A stretch of DNA of 64,000 nt, taken from positions 12,238,401 through 12,302,400 of the forward strand of contig OZ037767.1 in the NCBI GenBank assembly GCA_964035545.1, read 5' to 3'. This document shows, piece by piece, positions 55,201-62,714 of the stretch (positions within the stretch are counted from its first letter, which is position 1; the number at the start of each line of letters is the position of its first letter). The translations under genes and the position numbers were made by a program. A model generated the notes under the pieces. It saw only the letters and a list, made by a program, of their open reading frames with translations. It had not been told where the DNA came from and ran no database searches. Source of the stretch: Bugula neritina (Eukaryota; Animalia; Bryozoa).

Positions 55201-58200
55201 AATAGCTAATTTTTATGGTTTTCCTATTGAAAATTTCACTTAGTTGGTTGGATGGTGGAAAGCATTTGTTGATGATTTGAAGAAATTTCTTCCCTATTTT
55301 GGTTTTTACTGTTGAACTAAAAGGTGGGTTGTACCACAATATTCTTCTATTTCTATTTTTATTATTGTTGTTGGATTTAGGTGTCGGGTTATATTTTAAT
55401 TTATAGTCATATCCACTGTTTGATAGTGCTTCTTGGTACAGTTGTATGGTGGTGTTAAACTCCTTTTCATTGGAGGATAGTGAGCTAAGTCTTTTATTTA
55501 TATTTTCTGGTATGTTTTTCAATACTGCAGGTGGGTGGTCGCTTTGTTTGTGAACATAGAGGATAGTGTTTCCAGGTTTTGTATAGGGTTTATAGGATTG
55601 GTTAGTCAAGTTGAATGTTACATCTAGGAAGTTTACAACTTTCTTATTGGCTTCTATTGTGATTGAGAGATTAAATTTTCTAAAAAAGTTGCAAATTTGT
55701 TTTTTGTTCTGTTCTATATGTCTTGGTGTTCTTTCACAAACTATGAGTCCATTATCTCTATACAGGCCTAAATTACATTCTATATTCATTTCAGTAGTTA
55801 ATAGATTAAGCAAGTATATTCCAATTAGTTGGCAGGTTTCGGCGCCGTCATAGCTTCCCATAGTGACATCAAAATTACTGCCGTGTTTTTTTGTCCATTG
55901 TTCACTATTGGAGATAAGGATGGACTTTTTGGAGCGTAAAATGATTTCCTGGTGTTCAGTTGGTATGCTGGTAAAGTGTGACGCAAAGGAAAGGGCTTTG
56001 TAAAGGAGGTCTTCAGTTATTGATGGGTAGAAATTGCATATGTCAAAAGTAATAAATGACTTACTGCTTTTGTTCTTGATGTTTTCAAACCAATTTATTA
56101 CTGAGTAGGAATTCTTCCATATGTTGACTTTGATATGCTGGAGGAGTTTTGTGTTTATATTGTCCAATAATTGTTTGCTGATTATACCGATGTTGGATTT
56201 GGTGGGGTTTATTAGTCTGCAGGATGGTTTGTTATTGAAGTTAGGTTTGTGATCCTTTAAAGAAATAAAAGCTTCTTTCTGGGCTAGTACTTCTATTCTG
56301 GTGTCTAGATTTAATGATTTGGCGATTATGATGTCCTTAGTTGTGATTGATTTAGCTAGGTCAGGTGGGGCTTTTTTGTAGTCTTTTGTAATGTTTTGTT
56401 CAATCAGCTCTCTGTACTGGGAAGTGGATAGTTTGTAGAAATTGGTAGTTTTGTCAGCTTTCACTAGCAGTTTGTCATCATTTTTTAATATCCTTTACAC
56501 ACACACATATATATATATATATATATATATATATATATATATATATCCTTTACATATATATACGTAATATCCTTTACACACACACGCACGCACGCACGCA
56601 CGCACGCACGCACGCACGCACGCACGCACGCACGTACGCACACACGCACGCACGCACACACACACACACACACGCACACACACATATATATATCTGGCTA
56701 ATACAGCAGACACAGACCTGCCATATTAGCCAGATACTTGCAGCTGCTATGCAGACCTGCCATGTCTTTGATTTTATGAAATTATATTTCTAATTTTATG
56801 AATTCATATATATATATATATATATATATATATATATATATATATATATATTATTGAGGAAAAGAGCAATTTAATTATATAAATGTTGTTTTATTGTACT
56901 ACTAATAGTTTCATGCCTCTTCGGCACTCCTCAGGCACAATATTGACAAATTTAAATTTTTACATTAAGAAAATCAAAATGCTAAACACAAGGTAAAACG
57001 TAACGAAAACATAGCAGTGGCTGTATTGTTATATAGGTTTGTAGGTGTAAATTAATATATAAAAACCATAATGTAATGTACAAACATAATTTATAGCAGA
57101 TGCATGAAGTTTTTGTTGGGTGACTATTCTCTATGGGTATTTGTATATTATTTACTATAGTACTTAAAATATAAATAGGCTACAGAGTTTCTAGGTTTTG
57201 TGGTTGCACAGTAAGAATTTTCTTGAGTGTCGGCAGGTTGATAAGAGTTCGTTTCGCTTGTTTAAAGTACACATGTTAGGTTTGTATAAAATAAAGAAAC
57301 ATTCCCATAGGCATAAATTACACATATGGATTTAACTCAACTAAACCAACACCTCAAATAAAAGAACTTGCTAATTTTGAGAAGAAATTAATCAACCTGA
57401 TACGCAATGTGAAATTCAAACAGGATACAACTACTTTCCAAAGAAAACTTCGACAAGACATCAGAAACAAAATTAAAAACTCAACTACTCTTTTAGTACC
57501 ATCCGACAAAACTAACAACTTCTACAAAATGGATACACACCTGTACAACAAAATGCTCCAAGACAGCATCACCAAGACATACAAGAAGGTAAGCAAACAC
57601 ACAATAGACAAAATCAAAACTAAAACAAACCAAATTGTTAACAAACTAGACCTTATGGACAGAGTCACTACAACTAGTGAGCAAGAAGCTTTCATCACAC
57701 TGAAAGATCACAAGGACAATTTTACAAATAAACCAAGTTGCCGCCTCATAAACCCCTGCAAACCAGAGATAGGAAAGATTAGTAAGAAAATATTAGACCG
57801 AATAAATAACAAAATTCTCACAAACACACACCTAAACCAATGGAAAAACACCACTGATGTAATAAAATGGTTTGAAGGAATTAACAACAAGCATCAACAG
57901 ACATTTATTTCATTTGACGTCATAGACTTTTACCCTTCAATTTCAAAAAGCCTACTTGAAAACGCTCTAAGTTTTGCATCGGAATTTGATACAATTAGCG
58001 AAGATGAAAGAGAAATAATTATACATGCCAAAAATTCACTACTCTTCAACTCTGGAAAGACATGGGGAAAACATAACCACAACCTCTTCGACGTTACAAT
58101 GGGAGGATACGACGGCGCGGAAACATGCGAATTAGTTGGGACTTACATTTTAAACACAATAACACTAAAACATGGCAAAAACTTCGGCCTGTACAGAGAT

Positions 58201-62714: not shown

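Follow-up and report, generated by a model that had tools for sequence, protein, structure and literature searches.

How a retrotransposon comes to insert a copy longer than one of its own units is an old question for Penelope-like elements (PLEs), with a template jump, a multi-unit transcript and a circular RNA as candidate answers, and a locus in the genome of the bryozoan Bugula neritina provides a specimen on which it can be considered. The locus lies within a stretch of 64,000 nt of contig OZ037767.1 (assembly GCA_964035545.1, positions 12,238,401 to 12,302,400, forward strand), hereafter the window, whose internal numbering is used throughout. There, between 56847 and 62308, almost two units of a 2602-nt element stand in tandem, preceded by a shorter inverted copy of its 3' region. 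This arrangement is very probably the product of a single recent retrotransposition of an autonomous Hydra-clade PLE into a (TA)n microsatellite, which left a full-length copy in the canonical PLE arrangement that is probably transposition-competent.

Architecture of the insertion and identity of the element

Direct sequence comparison found no mismatch over the 2385 nt shared by 57322-59706 and 59924-62308, as a preliminary description of this DNA had claimed, and the identity ends abruptly on both sides with no extension either way. In unit coordinates (position 1 = 59707, position 2602 = 62308; Table 1), the direct arm amounts to 1.92 units, the upstream unit being without the leader and codons 1-54. 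Read as reverse complement, the inverted arm (56847-57323) corresponds to 59151-59627 and to 61753-62229, with a match at 476 of its 477 positions, the exception being a private T for C at 56882 (equivalent to 59592) that had escaped the preliminary description. The latter had rightly given an inverted copy of about 477 bp sharing a 2-nt overlap (AC, 57322-57323) with the direct arm, but this copy does not represent the very 3' end of the element: it stops 79 nt before it, at the equivalent of 59627, and is without the tail found at 59628-59706 and 62230-62308. Both outer flanks of the insertion consist of (TA)n.

Table 1. Parts of the insertion in window coordinates
Feature	Position	Strand	Remarks
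Left target flank, (TA)n microsatellite	56806-56846
Inverted 5'-truncated arm	56847-57323	-	Unit positions 2047-2523; ends at inner RT start site, tail-less
Hammerhead motif of inverted arm	56892-56942	-	Core 56908-56934; coordinates mapped from 59532-59582
Upstream 5'-truncated unit	57322-59706	+	Unit positions 218-2602; 3' part is the upstream pLTR
Sense hammerhead 1, type I	59532-59582	+	Minimal helix III; cleavage after 59574
Internal copy of the tail, between inner and outer RT start sites	59628-59706	+	79 nt, at tandem junction; has a stem-loop
Full-length unit	59707-62308	+	2602 nt; unit positions 1-2602
Leader	59707-59761	+	55 nt
Intact ORF	59762-61885	+	707 aa
Sense hammerhead 2	62134-62184	+	Cleavage after 62176
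Terminal tail	62230-62308	+	79 nt; direct arm ends at outer RT start site
Right target flank, (TA)n microsatellite	62309-62345
ORF, open reading frame; RT, reverse transcriptase or reverse transcription; pLTR, pseudo-long terminal repeat; aa, amino acids.

Such a layout corresponds to the canonical structure described for PLEs, in which pLTRs are accompanied by an inverted 5'-truncated copy and a tail occurs at one end only (PMC8557442, PMC3846280). The insertion indeed displays a partial tandem giving rise to pLTRs, together with an inverted copy truncated at its 5' end, a one-end tail and a hammerhead ribozyme within the pLTR. Retrozymes are defined by a small non-coding unit that stands in tandem and is expressed as circular RNA, whereas the present unit is 2602 nt long and codes for 707 aa.

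The 707-aa product carries the motifs RWK (aa 37-39), DKT (aa 116-118) and the RT motif YRDD (aa 345-348), followed in its C-terminal part by a CxCX5C linker (CNCRKKESC, aa 566-574), CNLC (aa 665-668) and CRH (aa 694-696), with a GIY-YIG domain extending from ca. aa 583 to 700. The diagnostics given for the Hydra clade by Craig et al. 2021 (PMC8557442) are a length below 3 kb, RWK, DKT replacing DKG, the CxCX5C linker, CxxC and CxH motifs flanking the E and N residues, no CCHH motif, a canonical hammerhead and a (TA)n target, and all of them are present in the 2602-nt element. In homologues the Hydra-clade motifs are invariant or nearly so, and the endonuclease (EN) domain has no other conserved set of Cys or His residues.

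Neither the whole protein nor its thirds had a match in Pfam, the RVT_1 domain being found in only one of 22 homologues, and sequence searches of PDB with the protein or with a profile of the 22 sequences returned nothing useful. Structure prediction was more informative. An AlphaFold (AF2) model built on the 22 homologues (predicted local distance difference test, pLDDT, 87.4; predicted template modelling score, pTM, 0.85) shows an RT related to those of telomerase: when it was compared with PDB by Foldseek, the top nine matches were all telomerase RTs (E 3e-8 to 3e-7), and YRDD is invariant in the 22 homologues. The C-terminal 165 aa, modelled alone (pLDDT 82.5), gave a weak result with Foldseek alone (E 0.1), while VIA-align superposed them on I-TevI (Z 8.8; root-mean-square deviation 2.4 A over 89 residues), T4 EndoII (Z 8.0), the GIY-YIG domain of UvrC (Z 6.1) and PD-T4-3 (Z 5.5), the next fold scoring 4.1. 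Together with the invariant catalytic columns Y587, Y601, G603, R612, H616, E671 and N685, the model shows that a GIY-YIG endonuclease is fused to the RT.

A large protein search further recovered more than 2400 relatives of ca. 705 aa with 50-58% identity, many of them on contigs about one unit long; those that are named come from a bivalve (Solemya) and a bryozoan (Watersipora). The element is a Hydra-clade PLE, assigned by its motifs, folds and (TA)n target, and, with its best protein matches 50-58% identical, it is a new sequence at the family level. The earlier view of a PLE having sense hammerheads and an intact 707-aa ORF is borne out.

Start sites, tandem junction and age of the copy

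The 216-Mb assembly contains at least 126 matches to the unit, and 142 to the hammerhead as compared to 0 for the control. From at least 142 hammerhead-bearing arms, 50 loci representing ca. 37 insertions were mapped on the unit coordinates. Most insertions are head-to-head pairs of 5'-truncated arms joined through 0-8 nt of microhomology or a short filler, and (TA)n flanks occur in nearly all of them. All 20 clean twin insertions pair an arm terminating at unit position 2523 (..CTCAATAATATA) with an arm terminating at 2602 (..ACAATTATTAT); the tail is the stretch of 79 nt between these sites, and each of the 20 has one tail. That each start site is used by one arm in every clean pair suggests that the two priming events are coupled. 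The sites themselves (59620-59627 and 59698-59706, and again 62222-62229 and 62300-62308) end in TA-like sequence, ..AATAATATA and ..AATTATTAT respectively, and might thereby pair with a (TA)n primer. That both target strands serve for priming, as had been proposed from the window alone, fits both this twin-arm pattern and in vitro data obtained with another PLE (PMC11167929; see below).

The 5' ends of many tiny twin insertions (L033, L037, L041 and others) cluster at an 8-nt palindrome, CAATATTG, located at 59528-59535 (unit positions 2424-2431) where it overlaps helix I of the hammerhead. This pile-up fits an annealing of the 3' ends of two same-sense cDNAs at a self-complementary site, and such palindromes have been taken elsewhere as evidence of self-priming (PMC3846280). 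The arms of one insertion differ from each other mostly by private singletons, and the idea that they derive from different template RNAs found no clear support. The window insertion obeys all of these family rules and is distinguished only by the length of its direct arm.

Four arms, including that of the window, cross the boundary of the unit: the window arm extends back to position 218 and the others to 1929, 2439 and 2406. The junction is the same in all four, with ..ATTATTAT followed directly by (A/T)AAAGCTCC. Two further arms, one of them started at the inner site, terminate precisely at unit position 1-2. Because these two arms stop there, 59707 is a real and recurrent 5' end, and the natural unit therefore runs from 59707 to 62308 and not from ribozyme to ribozyme, as first proposed.

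While different insertions of the family differ from each other by a median of 1.76% and a minimum of 0.31%, the two units of the window show no difference in 2385 nt, and both carry the private variants of this copy. These data indicate a single template lineage and a single event, and agree with the initial estimate of a very recent insertion. Among the matches listed, the only other locus with a pair of sense hammerheads spaced by one unit is C6:3.88 Mb, which differs by 2% and has an interrupted ORF, and whose units differ from each other at 6 positions in 672 nt. No plausible tandem donor for the window copy was found among the scored matches in the assembly. In the part of the genome surveyed, the window locus is the only one in which an intact 707-aa ORF lies between two sense hammerheads, the arrangement that PLEs are thought to need for further transposition.

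One base of the junction deserves mention. Position 59707 is a T private to this copy, as opposed to the A found at the three other tandem junctions, and with 14 private differences in 2602 nt the chance of one falling on the junction base is ca. 0.5%. The coincidence hints weakly at a discontinuity there, and the T may be a non-templated or misincorporated base left by a template jump.

Copies of more than one unit are not restricted to B. neritina. Relatives from metagenomes commonly show direct repeats having periods of 2.4-2.6 kb, and many of the contigs are of unit length and carry direct repeats at their ends, while two contigs (L085 and L111) comprise slightly more than two units with periods of 2427 and 2405 nt and inter-unit identities of 99.9% and 99.6%, respectively. 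Together with the arrays described above, these repeats indicate that more-than-unit copies are general in the clade. The survey provides reference points for this family: two start sites 79 nt apart, a one-tail rule holding in 20 of 20 cases, an RNA 5' end at 59707 and a palindrome that acts as a hotspot for arm joining.

Hammerhead ribozymes and the template of the direct arm

The hammerhead core CTGAGGA..GAAAC is present at 59540-59566 and 62142-62168 on the forward strand and at 56908-56934 on the reverse strand. The more general pattern CTGANGA..GAAAC occurs four times in the window for 0.42 expected by chance, three of the occurrences belonging to this insertion. Cleavage is predicted after GUA at 59574 and 62176, exactly 2602 nt apart, which agrees with the spacing first reported, and the two cuts would free an RNA of 2602 nt. 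In a search with 161 nt, Rfam Hammerhead_1 (RF00163) was matched over its full length with 17 bits for a gathering score of 34 (E 0.11), while a search with 10 kb gave no hammerhead at E<=1 and none of the hammerheads of 15 relatives reached the gathering score. Such low scores are expected because PLE hammerheads have a minimal, dimer-type helix III of 2 bp (PMC4209133), and the motif was therefore assessed by means of our own alignment and pair counts.

This alignment combines the window motif with 27 others from related elements in metagenome contigs. The core (CUGANGA, GAAA and the UH cleavage site) is invariant in all 28 sequences, and helices I and II, of 8 and 5 bp, are as expected for a type I hammerhead. 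Pair cells are paired in 85.6% of cases, versus 60.7% in shuffles and 31-40% with slid partners, and changes on both sides were observed for 16 of the 18 pairs, including 14 out of 14 in helices I and II. Within B. neritina, the 47-nt core region is nearly unchanged in family members that are ca. 10% diverged overall. The loop of helix III is a near-palindrome in the window element and a perfect palindrome in many relatives (e.g. CAGATCTG and CTAATTAG), a mark of hammerheads acting as dimers (PMC4209133). The comparative data show the hammerheads to be conserved components of the element, of the dimer-dependent type. The motif lies 132 nt before the 3' end of the unit, and 96-225 nt past the stop codon in relatives. 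Between the ribozyme cut and the two RT start sites, 5 nt past the former, there is an AATAAA motif (59579-59584) that relatives do not conserve and that is probably a chance match in AT-rich sequence.

From the geometry of the arms, the one-tail rule, the single lineage and the recurrent 5' end, we infer the following order of events. The GIY-YIG nuclease of the element would cut both target strands, and the 3' end of each would prime reverse transcription within the element RNA, the inner start (unit position 2523) giving rise to the inverted arm and the outer start (2602) to the direct arm with its 79-nt tail. The direct cDNA would then pass the 5' end of the unit at 59707 and add 2385 nt of a second unit, resulting in a partial tandem of the form pLTR-ORF-pLTR, after which the two nascent cDNAs would anneal through their 2-nt microhomology and each would template the second strand of the other. 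This order is in line with results obtained in vitro for PAc, an element of the Poseidon clade from Anolis carolinensis (Frangieh et al. 2024, PMC11167929), in which both target strands are cleaved and extended and RT initiates internally at two sites bracketing the tail, and with published PLE schemes involving a template longer than one unit (PMC11167929, PMC8557442). As for the source of the additional sequence, a jump may tentatively be put forward, by which RT would have moved from the 5' end of the RNA back to the outer start site on that molecule or on a sister RNA; a linear multi-unit or read-through transcript is a possible source as well, if a somewhat doubtful one.

Several points weigh against this scheme. 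All four tandem junctions use the outer start site and never the inner one, which fits continuous copying of a multi-unit or circular template slightly better than free re-initiation. The in vitro mechanism derives from an element of the Poseidon and not of the Hydra clade, the survey took in 50 loci of a larger number of arms, and the form of the template is read back from the DNA and not observed directly.

Other origins of the tandem have been considered, two of which can largely be set aside on the geometry of the junctions and the identity of the units. Since the family strongly targets (TA)n and each insertion is bordered by fresh (TA)n, two or three separate events could have struck one hotspot, an older twin insertion being followed by a full-length copy at its 3' flank; adjacent insertions of differing age do occur, as seen with L024/L047 and L046 and with a second PLE at 54.5-56.5 kb of the window. 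However, no (TA)n separates the two units, no separate inverted arm accompanies the second unit, the precise junction between ..ATTATTAT and NAAAGCTCC recurs at four loci, and the units show no difference in 2385 nt although a divergence of 0.5% or more is found even for the closest other copies. An independent double insertion is thus rejected as highly improbable. A duplication at the DNA level after insertion, or an artefact of assembly, seems just as remote. Perfect identity of a long repeat is what would be expected from a recent duplication or from mis-joins by an assembler, and complex PLE structures are known to trouble assemblies (PMC8557442). Yet a duplicated part of one unit would be expected to follow the full unit, whereas in this insertion the partial unit comes first, and its connection to the inverted arm is a microhomology, as elsewhere among twin insertions. 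The same layout exists with diverged units at C6:3.88 Mb and in the metagenome relatives, and the contigs are tens of megabases long. DNA-level duplication was rejected on these grounds, an assembly artefact is unlikely, and the divergence between units that the preliminary description had named as a sign of later duplication is absent.

The circular template favoured by the preliminary description requires closer attention. In this model, self-cleavage after 59574 and 62176 would release a monomer, ligated into a 2602-nt circle on which RT from the outer start site would run for 1.92 rounds. The idea was already published in 2014 by Cervera & de la Peña, who proposed that hammerhead cleavage and ligation produce circles templating more-than-unit cDNAs and that these explain PLE tandems (PMC4209133). 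It is in agreement with the two conserved sense hammerheads exactly one unit apart, with a helix III loop typical of dimer-dependent ribozymes acting on multimers, with the identity of the two units down to their private variants and with the lack of a matching tandem donor among the matches listed in the assembly. Moreover, the cut is located 5' of the two RT start sites, so that a cleaved linear monomer would yield cDNAs of only 53 or 132 nt unless rescued by circularisation, and only a circle or an uncleaved RNA can therefore template a long cDNA. On the other hand, a circle bears no mark at unit position 1-2, where two independent arms end, one of them from the inner site, and the junction base is a private T. 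Lengths and start points of other copies, which had been suggested as a check, did reveal three more boundary-crossing arms, but in the ca. 37 insertions 5' ends pile up at the palindrome CAATATTG and not at the hammerhead cut. Among the matches listed there is also no array of three or more sense hammerheads at unit spacing. Finally, hammerhead cleavage proved dispensable for PAc in vitro, where mutants of the ribozyme integrate normally, and the cut coincides with neither the start nor the end of any RNA-seq read (PMC11167929). Overall, the evidence leans against ribozyme-to-ribozyme circles as the usual template, and a circular origin of this particular copy is unlikely. Sequence alone cannot separate a circle, a template jump and a multi-unit transcript in the case of this copy. 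Should the circle prove true, the element would be the first autonomous protein-coding retrotransposon shown to use a ribozyme-made circle as template, and this would explain how PLEs regenerate the pLTR-ORF-pLTR form needed for activity.

Neighbouring features and comparison with known systems

The surroundings of the insertion are rich in repeats. Compound microsatellites are dense on both sides, with (TA)n/(CA)n/(CACG)n on the left (56480-56700) and (TC)n/(CACT)n on the right (62999-63996). A second and different Hydra-clade PLE, truncated at its 5' end, occupies 54430-56464 on the minus strand. Its ORF (54662-56464) encodes 600 aa that begin at the DKT motif and are 48% identical to the 707-aa protein; its hammerhead is located at 54560-54589 and has the palindromic helix III loop CAATATTG, and its 3' end adjoins (TA)n at ca. 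54430-54494. Further upstream, a hairpin of ca. 215 nt with long inverted arms (54020-54234) is probably a fold-back repeat or one resembling miniature inverted-repeat transposable elements (MITEs), and had only sub-threshold matches to plant microRNA precursors.

Elements of this kind and with this architecture have been described before, and so has the circle hypothesis. The closest counterparts are the PLEs with a C-terminal EN (EN+) of the Hydra clade (PMC8557442), which likewise have a single ORF in less than 3 kb, the same motifs, a hammerhead, insertion into (TA)n and the combination of pLTR, inverted copy and tail; the tail quoted for PLEs in general is 30-40 nt long, whereas that of the window element has 79 nt. 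Pen2a_Av and Pen2_Av of Adineta vaga and Penelope of Drosophila virilis are similar in having an ORF between direct pLTRs with an adjacent inverted pLTR, a tail at one end and a head-to-head junction formed by microhomology or a palindrome, and in these elements too the partial tandem of a truncated and a full copy is the transposition-competent form (PMC3846280). They differ in that they belong to the Penelope/Poseidon clade, with an ORF of ca. 840 aa and short target-site duplications, while the window element targets a microsatellite.

PAc shares with the window element a tail delimited by two neighbouring internal RT start sites, the use of both target strands, a hammerhead in the pLTR and a multi-copy transcript proposed as template (PMC11167929). 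Its start sites, however, fall within the start of the ORF and lack homology to the target, whereas those of the window element are in the 3' untranslated region and TA-like (..AATAATATA and ..AATTATTAT). Finally, metazoan non-LTR retrozymes (Cervera & de la Peña 2020, PMC7229834; bioRxiv 10.64898/2026.07.22.740005) resemble it by their type I hammerheads and tandem copies; rolling-circle RT on circular RNA has been proposed for them, and they probably use the PLE machinery and derive from pLTRs (PMC7229834; bioRxiv 10.64898/2026.07.22.740005). Retrozymes are 170-400 nt long and non-coding, with a circular RNA proven by experiment, while the element described here is 2.6 kb long, codes for a protein and is known from DNA.

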